Shown: one piece after another, positions 1,505-55,044 of the stretch
Layout: every line of letters starts with the position of its first letter
How positions within the stretch are numbered: position 1 is the first letter of the stretch
Assembly (NCBI RefSeq): GCF_902713615.1
Contig: NC_052172.1
Span: 12,752,185 to 12,816,184 of the forward strand
DNA from: Scyliorhinus canicula
Taxonomy: Eukaryota
Length of the DNA stretch: 64,000 nucleotides
Reading direction: 5' to 3'
Notes under the pieces: generated by a model
The model's input: only the letters and a program-made list of their open reading frames with translations
What the model was told of the DNA's origin: nothing
Databases searched by the model: none
Translations under genes and position numbers: made by a program

Positions 1505-4269
1505 CTGCAACAGAGAGAAAAGCTGCAATTATATGGCGCCTTTCACGGAGCTGGAATCACAGCAGCCCTGTGCTCACAGTGCTCCGGTTTCCTCCCACAG
1601 TCGAAAGATGCGCAGGTTGGGTGGATTGGCCATGCTAAATTGCCCCTTAGCGCGCAAGGATGTGTCGGTTAGGTGGGGGTTACAGGGATAGGGTGGGGGA
1701 GTGGGCCTGGGCAGGGTGTTCTTTCAGAGGGCCAGTACAGACTCAATGGGCCAAATGGTCTCCTTCTTAGCGGGCTATCAGAGAGAACTACCCTGTTTGT
1801 ATTCGAAATAGAGTCTTGGGATGTTTTACAAGCCTCTGAGGGGGTAGACCAAGCCTCACTTTAATATTTCACTCAAAAGGGCAGCACCTCCGACAGTGCA
1901 GCACTCTCTCAGTGTAGCACTGCGGGCATTATTGGGAGGCAGCGGCCCAGTGGCACTGTCACTGGACCAGAGACCCAGGGTGATGCTCTGGGGACCCACG
2001 TTCAAATCCTGCCACTGCAGATGGTAAAATTTGAATTCATTAAAAATCTGGAATTAGAAGCCGAATGATGGTCAGCACTGCTGCCTCACGGCATCGAGGT
2101 CCCAGGTTCGATCCCGGCCTCGGTCCGTGTGGAGTTTGCACATTCTCCCCATCTGTGCGTGGGTCTCACCCCCACAACCCAAAGATGTGCAGGGTAGGTG
2201 GATTGGCCACGCTAAATTGCCCCTTAATTGGGGAAAAAAGAATTAGGCACTTTACATTTTTTTGAAAAAGAAGTCTAACGATGACCATGACATCATTGTC
2301 GACTGTCGTAAAAACCCATCTGGTTCACGAATGTCCTTTAGGGAAGGAAATCTGCCGTCCTTACCCGGTCTGGCCTACATGTGACTCCAGACCCCAGCGA
2401 TGTGGTTGAATCTTAACTGCCTCCTCAAGGGCAATTAGGGATGGGCAATAAATGCTGGCACAGCGACGCCCACGTTTCATGAATGAATTTTTTAAAAAAT
2501 CAGTCCAGATGCTCAAGTCTGGTGTTTTGGGCACAGCGGCTTCTGGTTCTGAGGCAGGTGTGTGGCCCATTCAGCTATGGCTGGCACTCAGGGGGTACTG
2601 AGGCCAAAGAACCAGGCCAAGGCCGAGCATGAACTGGAATCGCTGAGCTCGCTCTGGTTCAATGCATGTTCCTGCTGAGCCACGCGGGAACTGGCCTCTC
2701 TCGCATCCTGTGTCAGGAAGTCAGATGGATCATCAACCTGAACAACAAAAGACCCTTCGCACAATCAGCAGCATTCCTGAAAACAGGATGCGGATAGAGT
2801 AGGGAACATACCGCCGGCCAACAGGAAGCTCCACCCCCTTCACATTCCACCTGCCTTTTGCGGATCACATCGACTGGATGAGGTTTTTAACTGAGTTCCT
2901 GTTTGGGCTGGTGTAGCGGATCCACAAGCATCGTTTCAAAGATGTGCGCATGGGGTGGGGGGGGCTTCTTCGCCGTGTCCCAGTCAATCGCTAAGTCGAT
3001 TTAAAATTGACCCCTGAAGGTTGAAGGGGGTTTTTCTTCCCAGCCCCCAATTACCCATCACAGCACTGGAACCGGGTAAACCTCTATAGTGAGGCCGCAG
3101 CGGGAGTATTGTGTGCAGTTCCGGCCACCGCACGATAGTAGTGTTGTGATTGCACTGGAGGTAGAGAACAGAGAACGTTTACGAGGATGCTGCCTGGAGT
3201 GGAGACTTTTATTTACGGGGCCGAGGTTAGGGAGTAGAGGTGGATGAGGGGAGACTTAAATAAACTGGATAAAATTGTGAGGGGACAGAGTGGATAGGAA
3301 GGCCCGACTACCCTTGGTTGAGGGGTGCAATGACCAGGAGGCATAGATTTAGGGAAGAGGTGGAGGTGGGGGTGGGGTTTAAAGGGTATAGAATCCATAG
3401 AATTTGCAGTGCAGGAGGCCATTCAGCCTATCGAGTCTGCACCGGCCCTACTAAGCCCCTTTATCCCCGTAACACAACATAACATTTTTGGACACTAAGG
3501 GCAATTTATCACGACCAATCCACCCAACCTGCATGTCTTTGGACTGTGGGAGGAAACCGGAGCACCCGGAGGAAACCCACGCAGGCACGGGGAGAACGTG
3601 GAGACTCCGCACAGACAGTGACCCATGTCAGGAATCGAACCTGGGACCCTGGAGCTGTGAAGCATCTGTGCTAACCACTATACTAGCGTGCTGCCCTCAA
3701 GGGGAGTTGAGTTTCTTTCACCCCGAGGGTGGTGGGGATCTGCAACCCACTCACTGTCCGAAAGGACGGTCGAGTCAGAAATCCTCATCTCATTTGCCCC
3801 TGAACTGCCCGAAGCTCCAAGGTGGGAATAGGCTGGAGGGGTAGGTGTCAGCTGGCACCAGCACGATGGGCCAAATGGCCACCTCCTGTGCTGGAAATTC
3901 CTACGAAGCCAATCACACTTTAATCCCCTGTCCGTGCGGAGTCTGCGGGGCTGGGAGGGGGTCCCGTCTTCAGTGCTCTGTCCTTTCCAGCTGTATGGCA
4001 CATATAGTAACACAGACTCTGCTCGATTCTCGGAGAGCTGCATCAATGTGAGCAACTCTGGAGAAAAACCATCCGAGACATTAAAAAAGGCTTCTTTTTC
4101 AAATACATTTTCTTGGAAGATGTCTCTTTACCATCTGAAAATGGCAAAGGAGGGCAGAGCATCACAGGGGTGGATCTGTTGGCCGACGAATGTGGGAGCC
4201 TGGGGGGCGGGGAGGTCATGGGATGAAAACTCCAGGAATACATTTGATCACATTTTGCAACCCGAGAGC

Positions 4270-4590
4270 CAGAAGGCTGGGAGTTCAAATCCCGCGTCAG
4301 AGACTTGAGCTCCAATCCAGGCTGATCACCTAGGGCAACACGAGGGAGTGCTGCAGTGCGGCAGAAGTTGCAATTTGTGCGAGACGTTCGACCGACAGCC
4401 CGATTGCCGTCTCGGGCGGATGTAAACAATCCCACGGCACTATTTCGAAGAACTGCCGGAGATTCCACTCCAGGGTTATGGATATTTATCCCACAATCCA
4501 CATCACAACAATCGATCCAGTCAGTAACACTGGTTACTGATTGCGGGATCCTTCTATGTAAATTGCATTTCCAATGTTATAACAATGACA
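4270..4590 (+). mobile_element. Degraded Deu-domain (SacSINE1-like) SINE
   Basis: GAGGGAGTGCTGCA..GGATGTAAA..ATCCCA.GGCACTATTTCGAAGA pattern; further relics near 1810-1925, 16070-16230 and 39600-40030. Confidence 0.55.
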
Positions 4591-8520: not shown

Positions 8521-8589
8521 GTGGGCGTGATCTTTGTGCCAGGGGCGGGGTCTCGGATCCAGGGGGCGGGGCCTTTGTGCCAGGGGCGG

Positions 8590-9935
8590 GGTCTCTGTGT
8601 TGGGGGTCTCTGTGTTGGGGCGGGGTCTGTGTGTTGGGGGGTCTCTGTGTTGGGGGTGTGTGTGTTGGGGGGGTCACTGTGTTGGGGGGTCTCTGTGTTG
8701 GGGGGGTCACTGTGTTGGGGGTGTGTGTGTTGGGGGGAGTCTCTGTGTTGGGGGGGTGTGTGTTGGGGGGTCTCTGTGTTGGGGGTCTCTGTGTTTGGGG
8801 GGTCTCTGTGTTGGGGGGTCTCTGTGTTGGGGGTCTCTGTGTTGGGGGGTCTCTGTGTTGGGGGGTCTCTGTGTTGGGGGGTCTCTGTGTTGGGGGGGGT
8901 CTGTGTGTTGGGGGGGTCTCTGTGTTGGGGGTTCTCTGTGTTGGGGGGTCTGTGTTGGGGGGTCTCTGCGTTGGGGGGTCTCTGTGTTGGGGGGTCTGTG
9001 TTAGGGGGTCTGTGTTGGGGGGGTGTGTTGGGGTGCTCTGAGTGTTGGGGGGGTCTCTGTGTTGGGGGGTCTCTGTGTTGGGGTGGGTCTCTGTGTTGGG
9101 GGGTGTGTGTTGGGGGGTCTGTGTTGGGGGTCTCTGTGTTTGGGGGGTCTCTGTGTTGGGGGTCTCTGCGTTGGGGGGTCTCTGTGTTGGGGGGTCTGCA
9201 TTGGTGGGTCTCTGTGTTGGTGGGTCTCTGTGTTGGGGGGTCTCTGTGTTGGGGGGTCTCTGTGTTGGGGGGTCTCTGTGTTGGGGGGTCTCTGTGTTGG
9301 GGGGGGGCTCTGTGTTGGGGGGTCTCTGTGTTGGGGGGGTCACTGCGTTGGGGGTCTCTGTGTTGGGGGGTCTCTGCGTTGGGGGGGTCTGTGTGTTGGG
9401 GCGGGTCTGTGTGTTGGGGGGGTCTCTGTGTTGGGGGGTCTCTGTGTTGGGGGGGCTCTGTGTTGGGGGGGGGTCTGTGTGTTGGGGGGGGTCTGTGTGT
9501 TGGGGGGGGTCTGTGTGTTGGGGGGGTCTCTGTGTTGGGGGGGTCTCTGTGTGTTGGGGGGTCTGTGTGTTGGGAGGGTCTCTGTGTTGTGGGTGTCTCT
9601 GTGTTGGGGGGGTCTCTGTGTTGGGGGGGTCTCTGTGTTGTGGGTGTCTCTGTGTTGGGGGGGTCTCTGTGTTGGGGAGGGTTTGTGTGTTGGGGGGGGT
9701 CTGTGTGTTGGGGGGTCTGTGTATCGGGGGGGTCTCTGTGTCGGGGGGGTCTCTGTGTTGGGGGGTCTCTGTGTTGGGGGGGTCTCTGTGTTGGGGGGGT
9801 CTCTGTGTTGGGGGGGGTCTCTGTGTTGGGGGGGGTCTCTGTGTTGGGGGGGTCTCTGTGTTGGGGGGGTCTCTGTGTTGGGGGGTGTCTCTGTGTTGGG
9901 GGGGTCTCTGTGTTGGGGGGTCTCTGTGTTGGGGG
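8590..9935. repeat. G-rich ~15-17 bp minisatellite (GGGGTCTCTGTGTT) in DMAC2 intron 1
   Basis: Directly visible. Confidence 0.95.
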
Positions 9936-10051: not shown

Positions 10052-10154
10052 CCTGGCCGCAGTACCGCCAAGGAGGCCGCGCCGAGGGCAAGAGCGGCCC
10101 TTTACCCGGCGGCAGTGGAGCCGGGAGGATTGTAACCCCGTGTAGCCCCGCTAG

Positions 10155-10845
10155 TGGCCGGAGGACCGAAGTGCAGCTCAGCGGCAGTGCAGTCGGGAGT
10201 CGTGGAACCCGGTGTCGGGCTGCTGCTGGAGGCCGGAGGTCCGAACTGCCACTCAGTGGCGGTGCAGCGAGGTGGGAGGTGGGGAAACGCGGTGTGGTGC
10301 CGCTGGAGGCCGGAGGACCAAACTGCCGCTCAGTGGCGGTGCAGCGAGGCGGGGAAACGCGGTCTGGCGCCGTTGGAGGCCGGAGGACCGAACTGCAGCT
10401 CAGTGGCAGTGCAGAGAGGCGGGAAAACGCGGTCTGGCGCCGCTGGAGGCCGGAGGACCGAACTGCAGCTCAGTGGCGGTGCAGTGAGGCGAGAGGTGGG
10501 GAAACGCGGTCTGGCGCCGCTGGAGGCCGGAGGACCGAAATGCAGCTCAGTGGCAGTGCAGCGAGGTGGGAGGTGGGGAAACGCGGTCTGGCGCCGCTGG
10601 AGGCCGGAAGACCGAACTGCAGCTCAGTGTCAGTGCAGCGGGGCGGGAGGTGGGGAAACGCGGTCTGGCGCCGCTGAAGGCTGGAGGACCGAACTGCAGC
10701 TCAGTGGCAGTGCAGCGAGGCGGGGAAACGCGGTCTGGCGCCGCTGGAGGCCGGAGGACCGAACTGCAGCTCAGTGGCAGTGCAGTGAGGCGGGGAAACG
10801 CGGTATGGCGCCGCTGGAGGCCGGAGGACCGAACTGCAGCTCAAC
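10155..10845. repeat. CpG-rich 70/77-bp tandem repeat, ~10 copies, upstream of the DMAC2 ATG
   Basis: Unit GGGGAAACGCGGTCTGGCGCCGCTGGAGGCCGGAGGACCGAACTGCAGCTCAGTGGCAGTGCAG. Confidence 0.93.
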
Positions 10846-28900: not shown

Positions 28901-31900
28901 GAGACTATTTTTAAGTAGATTCTGTAGACTGTTTGCTGGAATGTGCTGTTCAAATAGGTTCTGTAAATGCCACCCTACCTCCAATTCATTGACTAATTGT
29001 GGTGTCAACAAAAGTTCCTATATTTCCCCAAACGTGGCCAGGCATAGAAAAGTTCCGGCTCATGTCAAGGCAGCCATGGGGTCACTGCCAGGTTGCGGCT
29101 ACACGTCGATCCTCCTTACCTTCATCCGAAACCACGCCGAGAGGGAGCCCGGGTAAGAGCCCCCGAAGCAAATCCAACGGTGTTTTCCGGTCAGGGCGTA
29201 CTGTTGCTTAATGAACTCGTGGAACGTTGCTAGGTCAGCTAGCCTATCCGGAAAAGCACACTGGAGTTAGGGGCCACCAGGATAACGGAGAGGGACAACA
29301 GTGAAAAGACCCCAAGGCCCAAACAACGCAACGTTTTGCTCGGATTGCCAACAACCACCTGCATTTATATAGCACCCGTTACATAGCAAAATATCCCAAA
29401 CCACTTCACGGGAGCGTTAGCGAAAGTCAACATCGGAGCCACTCAAGTAGATATTAGGAGGTGCAAGAGACGGGCTGAAAGGAGCAGAGGTGGGGAGGTT
29501 TATGTCGAGAACGCAAGTTCTTGGGGCCCAAGCAGCTGAAGACACGGCCACCAATTATGGAGTGAAGGAAGTGGGGGAATGTGGAAGTAGTCGGAGTTGG
29601 AGGAAACACTGCGTTTGCAGAGGGTTGGACCAAGTAAGAAACAAGCCAGTTTCAGTCACATGCTCAGTTTGCTGTACAGCAGCTCAGAAACGCCACTTTT
29701 AAAATAGACTCTGTAGACTGTTTGCTGTAGTGTTCTGTTTAAATACACTCTGCATTCCGAGTAAGTTGTTAGTTTGTTGTTAGTCTGGTCACCATTCCTA
29801 AAACTCATTGGATGATGATGGTGTCAATAGCAAAGTTTCCCCAATGCTGCCAGACCAGGCGAGAGCAGCAATGGAAATATTAAGCCACCCTGGCTCATGG
29901 AAGGCAGCCACGGGTTCACTGACCCTTTGTTATCTTGGACTGACAAGTGGCAAGTTCAAGTGTCACACAAGCGACAGGGAATGACCATTTCCAACAAGAG
30001 AATCTAGCCAGCTCCCCCTGACATTTATTACGATAGCCGAAATCACCACCATCAACATACTAAGGGGGTTAACGATTGATCAGAAATTGAACTAGACCGA
30101 TTACATAATACCTTTGGCGACAAGAGGTCAGAAGCTGGGAATTCTGCGGTGAGCAAGTCACCTCCTGACTCCCCAAAGCCTGTCATAGAACATAGAACAG
30201 TACAGCACAGAACAGGCCCTTCGGCCCTCGATGTTGTGCCGAGCAATGATAACCCTACTTAAACCCACGTAACCCAACAATCCCCCCATTAACCTTACAC
30301 TACGGGCAATTTAGCCTGGCCAATCCATCTAACCCGCACATCTTTGGACTGTGGGAGGAAACCGGAGCACCCGGAGAAAACCCACGCACACACGGGGAGG
30401 ACGTGCAGACTCCACACAGACAGTGACCCAGCCGGGAATCGAACCTGGGACCCTGGAGCTGTGAAGCATTGATGCTAACCACCATGCTACCGTGAGGCCC
30501 TGTCCACCATCTACAAGGCACAAGTCAGGAGTGCGATGGGATATTCCCCACTTGCCTGGATGAGCGTCGTTCCAACAACACTCAAGAAGCTCAACACCAT
30601 CCAGGGCAAAGCATCCCCGCTTGATTGGCACCTCACCCACAAATATTCACTGGCACCCCATCCACAAACATTCACACCCCCCACCACCGACGCATAGTGG
30701 CAGCCATATGTACCATATAGAAGATGGGGGCAGCAACACGCCAACGATCCTTCGACAGCACCTTCCAAACCCGCGACCTCCACCATCTGGAAGAGCAAGG
30801 GCAGCGGACAGCCGCCTGCACGTTCATCCCCGAGCCACTCACCACCCTGACTTGGAAACACGTCGGCCATTCCCTCATGGTCGCTGGGTCAGAATCCTGG
30901 AACTCCCTCCCCAACAGCATGGAGGGAGTACCTACACCACCGAGACCGCAGCGGTTCAAAGGTGGCAAGCTCACCACCGGCTTCTCGAGGGCCAATTAGG
31001 GACGGGGCAATAAATGCTGGGCCCGGCCAACAGCGTCCACATCCCATGAAAGAATAAATTTGGAGTTCTGGCAGGAGGTTGGGGGGGGGTTTGGTGGTGG
31101 CAGGGGCGAGTAGATGACGCGGGGGAGGGGGGGGGATAAAGAGACTCGAGCAGTGGAAGAGCGAGAAGAGAAGCAAAGAGAAGCAGTAGAGAGCACACCG
31201 TTCAAAATCAGGCCAGGGCCCAAAATCATCGCCGTTAAGAACCTGACTTACCCTTGTTGACTCGACAGAAACTGGATGTTCTGGTCGCTCAGCCCGTCAG
31301 GGTTGATGCTTGCTCCGTAATAGCGGTGCTCCAGGGAGACCAATAGAGCTCTGTATTTCCGCGCTAGGTCCACATGCTCACCTGAAGAAACAAGAGGGAA
31401 ACGACTGGATGGTAACTGCATGGCTCCATCAAATACTGACCTCCCTGCGGAACAGTGACCACCAAACATCTCCAACCCCAACCAGGCCCAAAGTCAGACC
31501 ACCCTGCCCTGCGATGGACAATACCCCCAACCCCCACTCCAATTTTGAGCCGTAACGGGAGACACTTTAAACCTTCACCCGGAGACCCTGGAAGGTGCTA
31601 TAGGAATTCAAAGTGGGCTCTTTCATTGGATTGCCTGGCTCAGATCAGAGTCTGGACTAAAACAGAGTTGCATAGTTCAAAACTGACCCATCACAACATT
31701 CCCATGACTGTAAAGTGACCAGCGGCAGAAAGAACATACAGCACAGGATCAGGCCCTTCGGCCCTCCAGGCCTGCACCGACCATGCTGCCCGTCTAACCT
31801 AAAACCTTCCCCACGTCCGGGGTCCGTCTCCCTCTATTCCCATAGAACAGTACAGCACAGAACAGGCCCTTCGGCCCTCGATGTTGTGCCGAGCAATGAT

Positions 31901-40900: not shown

Positions 40901-43167
40901 CATGGTCAATCCCCCTGACCTGTACATCTTTGGGCTGTGGGAGGAAACCGGAGTACCCGGAGGAAACCCACGCACACACGGGGAGAACATGCAGACTCCG
41001 TACAGACGGTGACCCAAGGCTGGAATTGGACCTGGTTATTGTGAGGCAACAGTGCTAACCACCGCGCGACCCCCCCCTCCCTCCCTCCATCTGCCCACCC
41101 CCCCCTCCCTCCATCTGCCCACCCCCCCCTCCCTCCCTCCATCCATCTGCCCACCCCCCCTCCCTCCCTCCATCTGCCCACCCCTCCCTCCCTCCATCTG
41201 CCCACCCTCCCTCCATCTGACCACCCCCTCCCTCCTCCCCCCTCCCTCTGCCCGCCCCCCCTCCCTCTGCCGCCCCCCCCTCCCTCTGCCCACCCCCCCT
41301 CCCTCCCTCCAGCTGCCCACCCTCCCTCCATCTGACCACCCCCTCCCTCTGCCGCCCCCCCCCTCCCTCTGCCGCCCCCCCTCCCGCCACATACCTCCCT
41401 CCCTCCACCCACCTCCCTCCCTCCACCCACCTCCCTCCCTCCCTCCGCCCCCTCCGTCCACCCCCACCCCCCTCCTCCCTCCCTCTCGGTCTGTCTGTCT
41501 GCCCCCTCCTCCCTCCCTCTCGGTCTGTCTGTCTGCCCCCTCCTCCCTCCCTCTCGGTCTGTCTGTCTGCCCCCTCCTCCCTCCCTCTCGGTCTGTCTGT
41601 CTGCCCCCTCCTCCCTCCCTCTCTGTCTGTCTGTCTGCCCCCTCCTCCCTCCCTCTCTGTCTGTCTGTCTGCCCCCTCCTCCCTCCCTCTCTGTCTGTGT
41701 CTGCCCTCTCCTCCCTCCCTCTCTGTCTGTCTGTCTGCCCCCTCCTCCCTCCCTCCCTGTCTGTCTGTCTGCCCCCTCCTCCCTCCCTGTCTGTCTGTCT
41801 GCCCCCTCCTCCCTCCCTGTCTGTCTGTCTGTCCCCTCCTCCCTCCCTCTCTGTCTGTCTGTCTGCCCCCTCCTCCCTCCCTGTCTGTCTGTCTGTCTGC
41901 CCCCTCCTCCCTCCCTCTCTGTCTGTCTGTCTGCCCCCTCCTGCCTCCCTCTCTGTCTGTCTGTCTGCCCCCTCCTCCCTCCCTCTCTGTCTGTCTGTCT
42001 GCCCCCTCCTCCCTCCCTCTCTGTCTGTCTGTCTGCCCCCTCCTCCCTCCCTCTCTGTCTGTCTGCCCCCTCCTCCCTCCCTCTCTGTCTGTCTGTCTGC
42101 CCCCTCCTCCCTCCCTCTCTGTCTGTCTGTCTGCCCCCTCCTCCCTCCCTCTCTGTCTGTCTGTCTGCCCCCTCCTCCCTCCCTCTCTGTCTGTCTGTCT
42201 GCCCCCTCCTCCCTCCCTCTCTGTCTGTCTGTCTGCCCCCTCCTCCCTCCCTCTCTGTCTGTCTGTCTGTCCCCTCCTCCCTCCCTCTCTGTCTGTCTGT
42301 CTGCCCCCTCCTCCCTCCCTCTCTGTCTGTCTGTCTGCCCCCTCCTCCCTCCCTCTGTCTGTCTGTCTGCCCCCTCCACCCTCTCTGTCTGTCTGTCTGC
42401 CCCCTCCACCCTCTCTGTCTGTCTGCCCCCTCCACCCTCCCTCTCTGTCTGTCTGCCTGCCCCCTCCACCCTCCCTCTCTGTCTGTCTGCCTGCCCCCGC
42501 CACCCTCCCTCTCTGTCTGTCTGCCTGCCCCCTCCACCCTCCCTCTCTGTCTGTCTGTCTGCCCCCTCCACCCTCCCTCTCTGTCTGTCTGCCTGCCCCC
42601 TCCTCCCTCCCTCTCTGTCTGTCTGTCTGCCCCCTCCTCCCTCCCTCTCTGTCTGTCTGTCTGTCTGCCCCCTCCACCCTCCCTCTCTGTCTGTCTGTCT
42701 GACCCCTCCACCCTCCCTCTCTGTCTGTCTGTCTGCCCCCTCCACCCTCCCTCTCTGTCTGTCTGTCTGCCCCCTCCTCCCTCCCTCTCTGTCTGTCTGT
42801 CTGCCCCCTCCTCCCTCCCTCTCTGTCTGTCTGTCTGCCCCCTCCACCCTCCCTCTGTCTGCCCCCTCCACCCTCCCTCTCTGTCTGTCTGTCTGTCCCC
42901 TCCACCCTCCCTCTCTGTCTGTCTGCCTGCCCCCTCCACCCTCCCTCTCTGTCTGTCTGCCTGCCCCCTCCACCCTTCCTCTCTGTCTGTCTGTCTGCCC
43001 CCTCCTCCCTCCCTCTCTGTCTGTCCCCTCCTCCCTCCCTCTCTGTCTGTCTGTCTGTCTGTCTGTCCCCTCCACCCTCCCTCTCTGTCTGTCTGCCTGC
43101 CTGCCCCCTCCACCCTCCCTCTCTGTCTGTCTGCCCCCTCCACCCTCCGTCTGTCTGCCCCCTCCAC

Positions 43168-49345: not shown

Positions 49346-51661
49346 GTGGCCCTCACGCCCTCACTCCTGAGCTAGAAAGAACCTCCACTTGTCTCTGCAG
49401 GGTACCCTGGATATTAAGACACGGCGTAGCCAGACCACCCTCCCTAAACTGGCGATGTAGAAGCACCACAGAACCGCAATGCATCCTTTAGTCCAGAAGA
49501 AGTCAAACTTGGGGAGTGGAATCAAAGTGACCGACAGTATTGAAATGAAAATCGCTTATTGTCACAAGTAGGCTTCAAATGAAGTTACTGTGAAAAGCCC
49601 CTAGTCGCCGCATTCCGGCGCCTGTTCGGGGAGGCTGGCATGAGAATTGAACCGTGCTGCTGGCCTGCCTTGGTCTGCTTTAAAAGCCAGCTCTTTATCC
49701 CTGTGCTAAACCAGCCCCTGTAGTGTTTAGCTCCGAAACCAGCTAAGGACCCTGACCCGTCAATCACATTTGCCGCACCCCCTGGAGTAGGATCTGTTCT
49801 GCTGTCGCTACCATGATGTATATTGCTTCAATAGCTTGAAGCAGCACTGTTGAGGTTATTAAGAAGTATTTATTAACTACATCAGGTAAGGTGAGGATCC
49901 CATACTAGCCATCCAGGACAAAGCAGCCCCGCTTGATTGGCACCCCTTCCACAAACATTCACTTCCTCCACCACTGACACACAGTGGCAACCGTGTGCAC
50001 TGTCTACACCGTCTACGTATACTGCAGTAACTCACCAAGGCTCCTTAAGTAGAAACGTCCAAACCCACGATCTCTACCATCTATAAAGACAAGAGCAGCA
50101 CATACCTGGGAACACCACCACCTGGAAGTTCCCCTCCCAGTCACTCACCATCCCGACTTGGATAGATATCGGCCGTTCCTTCACTGTCGCTGGGTCAAAA
50201 TCCTGGACCTCCATCCCTAACAGCACTGCGGGTGTACCTACACCACATGGACTGCAACAGTTCAAGAAGGCAGCTCATCACCACCTTCTCAAGGGGCAAT
50301 TAGGGATGGGCAATAAATGCTGGCATCACCCACAACACCCACATCCCATGAATTAATCAAAAAGAAAGGTCCTTACATGTTGCTACCCACCCTTTCACCC
50401 TAGGTCATGTGACTTCTTACATCACCATGCGGGCGGTATGCCCCACGTTAACCCTTTCAGTACCAGATCTGTACGGCTTAACTAATTTTAAAAGTTACAT
50501 TTCATGACAGACTGCCTATAATGATTGGAACTGGGCAGTTCAAGTCAATTAAGCAAAAGGAGGAATTTTCTTATTAAAGAACACGGCATCTTTCACAACG
50601 TCAAGATGAACCAAAGTACTATGGAGCCAATTAAGTACTTTTCAAGTGTAGCCACTGTTGTCAGAGGAGGACTTACACTTTTGGGGGCCTTGCCCTCTCT
50701 GTACTTTCATGGGGGCCTCTTGGTGTCGTGGCGACCCTCCCCCATTGATGTCAATGCCCACCTGACCCCGGGTACCCCCAACTCACATAATGCAAGTCAC
50801 AGAAACCCAGATTGGGTTGACAGATTGGCTGTTGCAGTGTCTTTAACTTATGACAACAGCAAGCTTGTACTGTAGCTGATGAGGGGTGGCACTGTGGTTA
50901 GCACTGTTGCTTCACCACGCCAGGGTCCCAGGTTCGATTCCTGGCGCGGGTCACTGTCTGTGTGGAGTCAGCACGTTCTCCCAGTGTCTGCGTGGGTTTC
51001 CTCCGGATGCTCCGGTTTCCTCCCACAAGTTCCGAAAGACGTGCTTGTTAGGTGAATTGGACATTCTGAATTCTCCCTCTGTGTACCTGAACAGGCGCCG
51101 GAATGTGGCGACTCGGGAATTTTCACAGTAACTTCATTGCTGTGTTGATGTAAGCCTACTTGTGTTACTAATCAAGGTTATTATTAAATTGTGATGCACA
51201 GTATGTGCAGAATACGGAACCCCCAAATCACTGCTTGACACCCAATTCTTTTTTTTTCAATGAAGGGACAATTTAGCTTGGCCAATCCACCTAACCTGCA
51301 CATCTTTGGGTTGTGTCAAGCATACACGGGGAGAATGTGCAAACTCCACACAGACAGTGACCCGGGGCTGGGATCGAACCCGGGTCCTTGGCATGGCGAG
51401 GCAGCAGGGCTAGTCACTGCACCACCATGCCACCCGCTGTCAGCTCTTTAATTATCATAGATGTCATAGAATCCCCACAGTGCAGAAGGAGGCCATTCAG
51501 CCCATCAAGTCTACACTCCCCCTCTGAAAGAACACCCTAACTAGGCCCACTCATCTGCCCTATCCCTGTAACCCCATAACCCCACCTAGCCTTTGGACAC
51601 TAAGGAGCGATTAATCATGGCCAATCCACCTAACCTGCACATCTTTAACTGTGGGAGGAAA

Positions 51662-53801
51662 CGTGACGCGACTTTTCGTCCGGCGTCACTTTGTCCAATG
51701 TCACTTCGTCCACGTCTTTTGGTCCTACGTCTTTTTGTCCGCACGTCTTTTTGTCCGCACGTCTTTTTGTCCGATAATTTTTTTGTCCAAAGACTTTTTG
51801 TCCAATTGTAAACAAACTCCTTAGAAAACAAGGTATAATATCTTGCACAATATCTTTGTGTATAATGCACAAAACTATAACGAGCCTCGTTAAAGGATAG
51901 TTATTACCGTTCTCTTTCCGTTCAGTTGTTATTGTATTGTTAAAACCTCATGATAAAGTAGTGTACTCATTCTCTCTCTTTGAAATTGCTAAAATTAAAT
52001 GTAAACTTTCTGAATTTGCCCATCCCGAAATGGCAAAGTTCATTGTGTCGACCAAGAACAAAAGAAAAGTAGTTGATGAAAGTAATTACATCTACGATTT
52101 TCATTCAAGCAGTACAGAACTAGGAAAAGAATACTGGAGATGTGAGAAAAGAAGGCTGTGTTCAGTGCGGATTCACACGGTAACGGAAAACAATGAGCCG
52201 AAAATTATTTCTTTTTCTAGTGAGCACCTTCATCCAGCTGATGTAGATTCGTTAAATGCTAGAAAAGCAGTTGCAGAAATAAAGCATGAAGCAGTGGAAA
52301 ACATAGCAGCAAGTTCGCGTAGCATACTAGCGGCCAAGTTTACGCAACTAACAGAAAATACTTGCTCTCAACTTCCTAGGTTGCCCGTCGTCTCAAGGAC
52401 TATTCAAAGATGCCGACAAAAAAATTCTGGATTTCCCGCTAATCCAGCGGCTAGACATGGTTTTGAAATACCTGACGAATATTGTAAACTTGATAATGGC
52501 GAACAGTTTCTGACATACGATTCGGGCGTCGAGGATCAACAGCACTTACTAGTATTTGCATCAGAAAGTGCTCTTCAGGATATAGCATCATATCGTCATT
52601 GGTCATGTGATGGAACCTTCAAGATTGTGCCAGAACAGTGGTTTCAACTGTTTTGCATTCATGTACAAGTTAAAGGTAGCAGTTTTCCACGGGTCTTTGC
52701 ATTAATGCCGAATAAAACAAAGCAGACATACGAATTGTTTTTTGAGCAATTGAAAATTATGCAACCTAATGCAGATCCGCTTGATATCATGGCAGATTTC
52801 GAAGTTGCAGTTCACAAGGCATTTAATGCATCATTCCTTAATTCATCTGTCGTGGCATGTTTGTTTCATTTCAGCCAATCAGTGTTTCGAAAAATTACAG
52901 ATTTAGGCCTCAAAGAAAAATACAACACAGACTCTGAATTCTGTCTTAAAATTCGATGTTTCTCAGCATTAGCTTTCCTCCCCGTTGAAGATGTCGAAGA
53001 GGCTTATGAAGATTTGATAGACGATGAAGAAATACCTGCTGAATTCATCGTTTACTTCGACTTGACTTACATAGGCATTGCGAGAGATCGTGGTGCTAGA
53101 CAAAGGAGAGAACCACCTACATTCCCGACAGCTGTATGGAATGTTAATCAGCGTGTTCTACAAGATCTACCGAGAACAAATAATGCTGCTGAGGGGTTTC
53201 ATTCTGCGATAAAGCGTTCGGCGGGTGGAGCTCATTTGAATATCTGGAGGTTAATCAAAACTCTGAAGGAAGAGGAAGGGTTGGTTAAAGGCAAAAAGAC
53301 TCAAATTCTTCGGCGAGATCCGTCAAATTCATGTACGCGATATAAAAAATTAACTGAACGCCTCAAAAGATTGGTCACTGAATATGGTTCAACAGGAAAA
53401 AATGATTTTTTGAGGAATGTGGCATATAATTTGCATCAATTTTAAGTGATATCTTATCACTTTTAGTAATTTTTAGTAATAAGTTAACTTTTAGATAGTT
53501 AAATGTTATTACTTTTCTTAAATAACTTTTTTTATAAATACATCTTTCCACTGTATTTTACTTGTATTTTATCAATAAAAGTCTCATAATAAATCATTAG
53601 TTCTGTGAATCTATCATTGAAGATATTATACCTTGTTTTCTACGGAGTTTATTTACAATTGGACAAAAAGTCGTTGGACAAAAAAAACATTGGACAAAAA
53701 GACGTAGGACCAAAAGACGTGCGGACAAAAAGACGTAGGACCAAAAGACGTGGACGAAGTGACGTTGGACGAAGTGACGTCGGACGAAAAGACATAGCAC
53801 C
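51662..53801 (+). mobile_element. Full-length Mutator-superfamily (MULE, Phantom-like) DNA transposon, 2140 bp
   Basis: TIRs 51662-51844 and 53620-53801 containing ~15-bp subrepeats; 9-bp TSD GGGAGGAAA (51653-51661, 53802-53810); splits a V-SINE. Confidence 0.95.
52030..53445 (+). CDS. FLYWCH zinc finger plus MULE DDE transposase, 471 aa, intronless and uninterrupted
   Basis: YWRC-x5-C...EHLH (FLYWCH); WSCDGTFK (D1), IMADFE (D2), CLFH (CxxH), RTNNAAEGFH (E); AATAAA signals at ~53574-53593. Confidence 0.93.
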   Translation: MAKFIVSTKNKRKVVDESNYIYDFHSSSTELGKEYWRCEKRRLCSVRIHTVTENNEPKIISFSSEHLHPADVDSLNARKAVAEIKHEAVENIAASSRSILAAKFTQLTENTCSQLPRLPVVSRTIQRCRQKNSGFPANPAARHGFEIPDEYCKLDNGEQFLTYDSGVEDQQHLLVFASESALQDIASYRHWSCDGTFKIVPEQWFQLFCIHVQVKGSSFPRVFALMPNKTKQTYELFFEQLKIMQPNADPLDIMADFEVAVHKAFNASFLNSSVVACLFHFSQSVFRKITDLGLKEKYNTDSEFCLKIRCFSALAFLPVEDVEEAYEDLIDDEEIPAEFIVYFDLTYIGIARDRGARQRREPPTFPTAVWNVNQRVLQDLPRTNNAAEGFHSAIKRSAGGAHLNIWRLIKTLKEEEGLVKGKKTQILRRDPSNSCTRYKKLTERLKRLVTEYGSTGKNDFLRNVAYNLHQF

Positions 53802-55044
53802 GGGAGGAAACCGGAGCACCCGGAGGAAACCCACGCAGACACAGGGAGAGCGTGCAAACTCCTCACAGTCACCCGACGCCGGAGTCGAACCCGAGTCCCT
53901 GGCACTGTGAGGCAGCAGTGCTAACCATTGTGCCACACGTGCTGCCCAAGCCAACAAACTCATAACATGGCAGGGGCTGGTTTAGCTCACTGGGCTAAAT
54001 CACTGGCTACGAAAGCAGGCCAGCAGCACGGTTCTATTCTCGTACCAGCCTCCCCGAACAGGCGCCGGAATGTGGCGACTAGGGGCTTTTTACAGTCACT
54101 TCATTTGAAGCCTACTTGTAACAATAAGTGATTTTCATATTGTTATTGTACTGTTGTCAGCATTAATTATTAATTAATTAATAATCTTTATTGTCACAAG
54201 TAGGCTTACATTAACACTGCAATGAAGTTACTGTGAAAAGCCCCTAGTCGCCACATTCCGGCGCCTGTTCGGATACACAGAGGGAGAATTCTGAATTTCC
54301 AAATTACCTCACAGCACGTCTTTCGGGACTTGTGGGAGGAAACCGGAGCACCCGGAGGAAACCCACACAGACACGGGGAGAATGTGCAGACTCTGCACAG
54401 ACAGTGACCCAAGCCGGGAATCGAACCTGGGACCTTGGCACTGTGAAGCAACAGTGCTAACCACTGTGCTACCGTGCTGCTCCACTTGAACGTCCTCCCA
54501 AAATTCCTCATCTAACTCTGTCTGCGTTGGTCTCACTCCCACAACCCAAAAAGATGTGCAGGTAGTTGAACTGGCCACGCTAAATTGCCCTTAATTGGAA
54601 ACAAAGAATTGGGTACTTTAATTTTTTTTTCAATCATTCAGTAAGATCAGGGCTGATGCCCTACCACCACTTTTACTTCCCTGCCCTGCCCCCTGATGGC
54701 TCTGGGGCGGCACGGTGGTTAGCACTGCTGCCTCCCAGCGCCAGAGTCCCAGGTTCGATTCCCGGCTTGGGTGACTGTCTGTGTGGAGTTTGCACGTTCT
54801 CCGTGTGTCTGCGTGGGTTTCCTCCGGGTGCTCCGGTTTCCTCCCATTGTGCAAAGATGTACAGGTTAGGTGGATTGGCCACGCTAATTTGCCCCTTAGT
54901 GTCCAAAAGGTTCGGTGGGGTTACTGGGTTACGGAGAAAGGGTGGTGGTGTGGGCTTAAGTGGGGTGCTCTTTACAAGGGCCTGTACAGACTCGATGGGC
55001 CGAATGGCCTCCTTCCGCACTGTAAATTCTATGATAGTCATTTA

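Follow-up and report, generated by a model that had tools for sequence, protein, structure and literature searches.

A multi-copy FLYWCH-type Mutator transposon, probably acquired by horizontal transfer, in the genome of the shark Scyliorhinus canicula

We analysed a 64-kb stretch of contig NC_052172.1 from the shark Scyliorhinus canicula (positions 12,752,185 to 12,816,184, forward strand), referred to here as the window, in whose coordinates all positions are given. Window positions 51662-53801 are occupied by a DNA transposon unit of 2,140 bp that is bounded by long terminal inverted repeats (TIRs), is flanked by a target site duplication (TSD), encodes a transposase in a single open reading frame (ORF) and lies within a short interspersed element (SINE) of the host. 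A sequence-only reading of the window, made before this analysis, had described a 2140-bp unit with a perfect 9-bp TSD and TIRs of ~183 bp, and all of these structural claims were borne out. The transposon and the host repeat that surrounds it are laid out as follows.

51455..51652, no strand assigned: one half of the interrupted host SINE, which together with 53811-53947 aligns across the junction to 27 window copies
51653..51661, no strand assigned: left TSD copy, 9 bp, GGGAGGAAA, an exact repeat of 53802-53810
51662..51844, + strand: left TIR, 183 nt, with the terminus CGTGACGCGAC; sub-repeats of 15-16 bp with the core CTTTTKGTCC, mostly with ACGT before the core
51845..52029, + strand: 5' untranslated leader, 185 nt, between the left TIR and a start codon conserved with the Tara Oceans homologue P0181
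52030..53445, + strand: transposase ORF, 471 aa plus stop, intron-less and free of internal stops, with a gap-free end-to-end alignment to the 471-aa P0181
53446..53619, + strand: 3' untranslated region (UTR), 174 nt, AT-rich, with AATAAA at 53574-53579 and 53588-53593
53620..53801, - strand: right TIR, 182 nt, the outermost 11 nt of which (reverse complement GGTGCTATGTC) differ from the left terminus at 6 positions
53802..53810, no strand assigned: right TSD copy, 9 bp, GGGAGGAAA, an exact repeat of 51653-51661
53811..53947, no strand assigned: other half of the interrupted host SINE (repeat families D4 and D5; junction alignment)

The TSD was perfect over 9 bp, and the tenth base, C, was also identical but ambiguous. 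Across 173 aligned nt the two TIRs were 93% identical, and Tandem Repeats Finder resolved them into arrays of 15-16-bp units. The core motif of these units, CTTTTKGTCC, occurred 10 times in the 64-kb window, with five occurrences in each TIR in inverted orientation and none outside the TIRs, compared to 0.8 expected by chance. Both TIRs together made up 365 of the 2,140 bp (17% of the element). The promoter of the element is presumed to lie in the leader (51845-52029) or where the TIR adjoins it. The start codon and the full length of the transposase gene are collinear with the 471-aa Tara homologue, which shows the gene to be without introns, and the stop-free frame of 471 aa with its own AATAAA signals, noticed already in the bare sequence, was found again at the positions given above.

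Insertion of the transposon into the SINE, another of the initial observations, was confirmed as well. When the two SINE halves were joined and one TSD copy was removed, the result aligned through the junction, without interruption, with 27 further SINE copies of the window (71-80% identity), and each of these 27 uninterrupted copies carried a single GGGAGGAAAC, i.e. the empty site. The 9-bp duplication is therefore a true insertion footprint and not a chance repeat, as the uninterrupted copies have the motif once. The uninterrupted form was also present in thousands of contigs assembled from public sequencing runs. The SINE itself is dense in the window (39 BLAST matches in 64 kb, 71-80% alike to the interrupted copy), and its copies are 20-29% apart from each other. 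Its k-mer depth reached 10^5-10^6 in the runs of two organisms, here called A and B, and was zero in those of a third, organism C. ARAGORN found no tRNA in the SINE, and a literature search on its core motif returned no match.

The protein encoded at 52030-53445 combines two Pfam domains and the following residues.

52048..52233, + strand: FLYWCH zinc finger, residues 7-68 (W36, C38, C44, H66, H68), Pfam PF04500, 35.8 bits (cut-off 23.6)
52600..52878, + strand: MULE (Mutator-like element) domain, residues 191-283, Pfam PF10551, 42.5 bits (cut-off 27.6)
Within the MULE domain, + strand: D194 (52609-52611), D256 (52795-52797), E258, C277 and H280, invariant in 62 homologues
53191-53193, + strand: catalytic E388, downstream of the Pfam MULE domain, invariant in 62 homologues

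Conservation was judged from an alignment of the window protein with 61 homologues at 30-79% identity. Fifteen columns were invariant across the 62 aligned sequences, and all 15 were kept in the window protein: C38, C44, H66, H68, D194, T196, F197, P201, Q206, Y234, D256, E258, C277, H280 and E388. These columns cover the four zinc ligands, the DDE triad and the CxxH motif, in agreement with the initial description of a retained FLYWCH finger, both catalytic Asp residues, CxxH and Glu. The window protein also kept 60 of the 66 highly conserved columns. An AlphaFold2 model built on the homologue alignment (pLDDT 93.9, pTM 0.79) found its best match among solved structures in the IS256-family transposase of ISCth4, followed by retroviral integrases and Hermes; a sequence search of solved structures with the transposase gave no match. 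The modelled N-terminal domain superposed on the human FLYWCH1 domain 2rpr with a template modelling (TM) score of 0.71 and a root-mean-square deviation of 1.9 Å. The nearest Swiss-Prot models were those of the Drosophila Foldback NOF protein, K. lactis alpha3, plant FAR1/FRS proteins, vertebrate ZSWIM proteins and IS256 transposases, a neighbourhood that is the Mutator/Foldback/IS256 clan with its domesticated offshoots.

Every defining feature tested for the Mutator superfamily and for the FLYWCH-MULE 'Phantom' type, as set out in PMC3169594 and PMC6446971, is present in the element. For Mutator/MULE membership, it has long TIRs (183 and 182 nt), a perfect 9-bp TSD within the 8-11 bp range of the superfamily (PMC6446971), and a MULE (IS256-like) DDE domain with the catalytic D, D and E and the (C/D)x2H motif. 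For Phantom membership, it has an N-terminal FLYWCH finger on the transposase and, from the range of simple or foldback-like TIRs and sub-TIRs found in this type, sub-repeated TIRs together with a 9-bp TSD. The Phantom-like FLYWCH-DDE identity proposed at the outset fits on each of these counts.

Close relatives of the transposase came from marine invertebrates. Among 5.8 billion proteins searched, the best match was a protein of the shrimp Palaemon carinicauda (XP_068246463; 78% over 379 aa), a protein of Octopus bimaculoides (A0A0L8GV05) matched at 80% over 262 aa, and the next full-length relative was 49% identical; no named vertebrate protein was among the matches listed. An exhaustive representative search added two Octopus vulgaris fragments at 75%. 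The corresponding Octopus vulgaris copies, L003 (OX597835) and L004 (OX597834), with the proteins CAI9739154 and CAI9738575, could be compared with the shark element at the DNA level. L003 aligned to element positions 100-2133, UTRs and TIRs included. Over the shared stretch of ORF plus 3'UTR, identity was 85.4% between shark and L003, 86.9% between shark and L004, and 85.4% between L003 and L004. For the ORF only, the same three comparisons gave 86.8%, 88.0% and 86.5%, and for the 3'UTR only, 74%, 78.5% and 77.5%. These identities are star-like, the shark copy being as near to each octopus copy as the octopus copies are to one another. The noncoding 3'UTR and TIRs aligned to the octopus copies at 72-78%, and the 5' leader was only 62% identical to the octopus copy.

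The Tara copies served to polarise the changes between shark and octopus over 902 columns: 33 were assigned to the shark branch and 11 to the branch common to both octopus copies, and 68 and 53 were private to L003 and L004, respectively. From these branch counts and the star-like identities, it follows that the shark and octopus families arose from founders only a few per cent apart. The TIR sub-repeats and the terminal GTGAC motif are the same in the octopus copies as in the shark element, and the poly(A) signal is nearly so (the first AATAAA is kept in L003, and L004 has AATTAAA, one base off). The octopus copies differ from the shark element in their many stops (at least 35 per frame in L003) and in their private changes, which amount to 6-7.5% in each, whereas the shark copy has an open frame and ~1% private change. 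Both octopus copies (L003 around 2489-4442, L004 around 2868-3799) are surrounded by DNA rich in microsatellites. Gene models for hypothetical proteins have been annotated on parts of them, and these models are relics of the transposon.

The protein cluster of the shrimp includes a full-length member of 471 aa, P0181, on the Tara Oceans contig L001 (PRJEB4352). P0181 was 79% identical to the window protein and collinear with it without gaps. The ORF of L001 was 82.8% identical to the shark ORF in DNA, with a synonymous divergence (dS) of 0.59 and a ratio of non-synonymous to synonymous divergence (dN/dS) of 0.19, and its TIR sub-repeats were 86% identical over 133 nt. The 5' and 3' untranslated parts of the Palaemon/Tara elements could not be aligned with the shark element, which sets them apart as a distinct sister subfamily. 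A second Tara contig, L002, accompanies L001; the two are ~2.1-2.4 kb long, and their ORFs are 99% alike, one with an intact 471-aa frame and the other frameshifted, which suggests that the shrimp-type subfamily was recently active in some planktonic animal. In the protein tree, the shark sequence grouped with three octopus sequences (support 98/96), this group was sister to Palaemon plus Tara (97/94), and these sequences as a whole were nested among other elements from marine invertebrates and metagenomes.

The split between vertebrates and protostomes is over half a billion years old, and synonymous sites are saturated between them. Given that saturation, a dS of 0.59 and ORF identities of 83-88% are not explained by vertical descent, and horizontal transfer of the family into the shark lineage is strongly supported by the sequences compared here. 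The alternative would be an old vertebrate family, inherited vertically, with a transposase so strongly conserved that it still resembles those of invertebrate elements. Nothing specific speaks for it, apart from the under-annotation of transposon proteins in vertebrates, among which relatives may be hidden. It is contradicted by the alignment of the noncoding 3'UTR and TIRs to octopus, by the star-like distances, by a dS to the plankton/shrimp lineage well short of saturation, and by a tree at odds with host relationships. Base composition also misfits. The GC content of the element was 37.7% compared to 52.2% for the window, and its ratio of observed to expected CpG was 1.09 (1.75-1.8 in the TIRs), compared to 0.46 for the whole window and 0.45 for the window outside the element, so that a CpG-undepleted, AT-rich element sits in a CpG-depleted, GC-rich host. 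The octopus and Tara copies had a GC content of 36-38% and CpG ratios of 0.74-0.94. Overall, we regard vertical inheritance as highly improbable.

Horizontal acquisition had been raised in the sequence-only reading as a possibility, with the AT-rich body and the CpG-keeping TIRs as its signs. The composition figures confirm those signs, and the relatives in octopus, shrimp and plankton at 83-88% ORF nucleotide identity, together with the nested position of the shark sequence in the tree, raise the claim to a strongly supported one. Transfer from an invertebrate to the shark seems the likelier direction, because the shark sequence is nested among invertebrate elements and its composition is foreign to the host. 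Scans of viral and metagenome contig collections with the protein, with an alignment of the close family and with a double sub-repeat DNA pattern found no relatives; as the viral collection gave none, no viral vector is suggested.

The element is not confined to the window. Between 30 and 48% of its 31-mers were contained in public runs of organisms A, B and C, the holders of which came from 9 studies, with organism A represented by runs from several independent studies. Run contigs spanned the whole ORF at a k-mer depth of 100-400, and the size of these runs falls far short of what assembly of single-copy DNA from a large genome requires. Contigs of organism A differed from the window copy by ~3.3-3.4% (63/1,864 and 67/2,005 letters), and those of organism B, which bear the SINE, by ~2.2%. 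In run X19 of organism C, a metatranscriptome, contigs of a relative ~90% identical in DNA were found over window positions 51982-53329. This relative, from a non-shark sample with zero SINE depth, is closer to the shark element than any octopus or shrimp copy retrieved, and at its right end it has a terminus like the left one of the shark element; organism C could be nearer to the donor lineage.

Substitutions were analysed for the 30 best-supported ORF differences between the window copy and the run contigs. Relative to organisms A, B and C, nine nucleotide changes were private to the window copy, eight of them non-synonymous and one silent, with the non-synonymous changes falling in seven codons (Y61S, R162T, L281F, G353D, R358Q, I441L and R456G). 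Differences seen only relative to the organism A majority comprised 7 non-synonymous and 9 synonymous changes. The 8:1 private pattern reads as neutral decay after insertion, and the 7:9 pattern as subfamily divergence under selection for a working transposase. Private divergence is thus near 1%, the remainder being subfamily structure, which would explain why the ORF is still open.

These observations also bear on two ways in which the element might be something other than a resident transposon. The first is an artefact, in which octopus or shrimp DNA from prey or a parasite was misassembled into the contig; sharks do eat cephalopods and crustaceans. Against this, the insertion interrupts a host SINE and is cleanly flanked left and right by the 9-bp TSD. 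Many independent runs that contain the SINE also yield, at high depth, copies that are 97% alike, and the octopus copies, at 78-88%, are not identical. The second is a domesticated, single-copy gene derived from a MULE, of which vertebrates own examples (ZSWIM proteins, FLYWCH1). Its TIRs and TSD, its multi-copy state and the neutral pattern of its private changes are not those of such a gene, and a domesticated MULE gene of the ZSWIM, FLYWCH1 or FAR1-like kind was rejected on these features, including the 8 non-synonymous to 1 synonymous private changes. Taken together, an artefact or a domesticated gene is barely credible.

Whether the window copy itself can still move is a separate matter. 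In addition to the private changes, it carries R172H, at a position where R is found in at least 90% of the 62 homologues and in all close relatives, and P270L and G429R are two further departures from conserved columns that no close relative shares. The two TIR arms differ at 6 of their first 11 bases, compared to only 12 differences in nt 12-183. The left terminus, CGTGACGCGAC, matches the right end of octopus L003 and that of organism C, so the right terminus is the deviant one; three of its changes (53791-53801) are CpG transitions. A few other CpG-to-TpG differences separate the arms, each of which retains 13-14 CpGs, a state that would fit a modest residence in a methylating genome. On the scale of the other repeats of the genome the window copy appears recent, given that host SINE copies are 20-29% apart.

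A window copy that is currently active and autonomous, makes a working transposase and can be excised would account for the open 471-aa frame, the complete set of invariant catalytic and zinc residues, the perfect TSD, the complete sub-repeat arrays and the largely retained CpGs. Runs guessed to be RNA contain 40-48% of the ORF words, and one of them has contigs over the ORF and hardly any over the ends, although the RNA label of these runs is a guess. Such activity is at odds with the 8 non-synonymous changes in 7 codons against 1 synonymous change, with R172H, P270L and G429R at conserved columns, and with a right terminus in which 6 of 11 bases depart from the form common to the left end, octopus and organism C. 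In Muta1, a related element of Aedes aegypti, the mutations nearest the terminus cut excision most (PMC5499845). We consider it quite unlikely that this copy is active. The wider proposition that, whatever the state of the window copy, members of the family continue to transpose in the host genome today is possible, although we lean somewhat against it: the 7:9 ratio relative to the organism A majority indicates subfamilies under selection for function, yet ~1% private divergence in a slowly evolving genome could equal millions of years of silence. The window copy is probably a recently dead or weakened member of a family with or without active members.

The claims of youth and activity made from the sequence alone therefore divide. 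Youth holds on the scale of the genome's repeats, and the notion of a recently active autonomous family fits the multi-copy state in public runs; activity of this copy is weakened by its distance of ~3% from the majority, its private amino acid changes (at least seven), R172H and the deviant right terminus.

With good confidence, then, we interpret the element as one copy of a multi-copy, autonomous, cut-and-paste Mutator family of the FLYWCH-MULE ('Phantom') type that was acquired horizontally, this copy being in decay. Several points weigh against parts of this interpretation. The Phantom type was assigned from features (FLYWCH, sub-TIRs, TSD), and the tree comprises only unnamed relatives. 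The copy number that we infer from contig depth, in the hundreds, is an order of magnitude only, depth not being equal to copy number. The missing vertebrate protein matches are weak evidence of absence, as transposon proteins are rarely annotated in vertebrates, and the family may already be curated in Repbase or Dfam. Finally, the right terminus reflects either clustered damage or a feature of a subfamily with asymmetric ends, and in the latter case it would not be a sign of decay.

Elsewhere in the window, large minisatellites occupy 8588-9935 (16-bp units x 82), 10148-10843 (70 bp x 9.5) and 41468-43152 (34 bp x 51). They produce stop-free 'ORFs' of 500-790 aa in several frames and on both strands, with no Pfam domain. 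None of 15 long ORFs of the window had a Pfam domain, the longest being minisatellites. A sub-threshold Rfam match to the plant MIR395 at 54072-54254 (28 bits, compared to a gathering score of 56) was taken as chance, and a tblastn match at 29254-29427 (E 0.23) was not significant.

The element is a known transposon type in an unexpected host clade. Dupeyron et al. (2019) reported no credible vertebrate MULE transposase and posed this absence as an open question (PMC6446971), and the main text of a 2020 vertebrate-wide survey of horizontal transfer contains no Mutator element and no cartilaginous fish (PMC7070016). A literature search on MULE, MuDR or Mutator in shark, Chondrichthyes or elasmobranch found no report. 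A complete FLYWCH-MULE, with its ends, TSD and open frame, amplified in the genome of a cartilaginous fish is a direct answer to the question of vertebrate MULEs, and it adds a well-resolved marine transfer across phyla (mollusc, crustacean, vertebrate) for the Mutator superfamily. A MULE with a history of function in vertebrate nuclei is also a new candidate transposon vector, and the sub-repeats of its ends offer a simple system in which to study DNA recognition by FLYWCH domains. A bolder version makes the family the first genuine autonomous Mutator of a vertebrate, mobile to this day and part of a living predator-prey network of transfer among cephalopods, decapods and elasmobranchs. This version strikes us as rather unlikely; if it were true, intact host copies would provide a natural, vertebrate-adapted MULE, both a genetic tool and a tracer of DNA movement between marine animals.

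How the transposase would act can be sketched from better-known systems, and, as with the time of transfer and present activity, we infer the DNA binding and the cutting chemistry. By analogy with Muta1, the FLYWCH finger of the 471-aa transposase presumably recognises the TIR sub-repeats and would bind the 15-16-bp arrays in both TIRs. The RNase-H-like DDE core (D194, D256 and E388, with C277-x2-H280) would then cut both strands at each end by way of a hairpin formed on the flanking DNA, and the freed 3'-OH ends would join the target at a staggered cut with positions 9 bp apart, a stagger that is visible in the TSD.

Muta1 of Aedes aegypti is the closest experimental counterpart. It has the FLYWCH-DDE layout, its protein was purified and assayed and binds the element ends specifically (PMC5499845), and it was grouped with Phantom (group 20) by Dupeyron et al. 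(PMC6446971). Compared by description, both elements have a single ORF of ~500 aa, an N-terminal FLYWCH finger, a C-terminal DDE domain, long TIRs and a long TSD, and a common mechanism may be expected (binding of the ends, hairpin-type double-strand breaks on the flanking DNA, and dependence on DDE and a conserved W). The two differ in that Muta1 belongs to an insect, whereas the shark element resides in a vertebrate and has 183-nt TIRs built as sub-repeat arrays. The Mutator/Foldback element Tm1 of root-knot nematodes (PMC3169594) shares a Phantom-like transposase within composite, sub-repeated TIRs and a 9-bp TSD; in its family, MITE-like (miniature inverted-repeat) and foldback derivatives stand beside the coding element. 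The Foldback NOF protein of Drosophila is the best Swiss-Prot structural match of the shark transposase. The shark element differs from Tm1 and Foldback in its lack of introns and in TIRs that are only 17% of the unit and not its bulk, for which reason a Foldback identity was rejected. The FLYWCH finger of Tm1-A is without the last histidine, whereas that of the shark element keeps all four zinc ligands. The ISCth4 transposase (PDB 6xgx, 6xg8), a prokaryotic insertion-sequence protein with 12% identity and no FLYWCH domain, is the best whole-protein structural match and shares with the shark transposase an RNase-H-like DDE core with an alpha-helical insertion.

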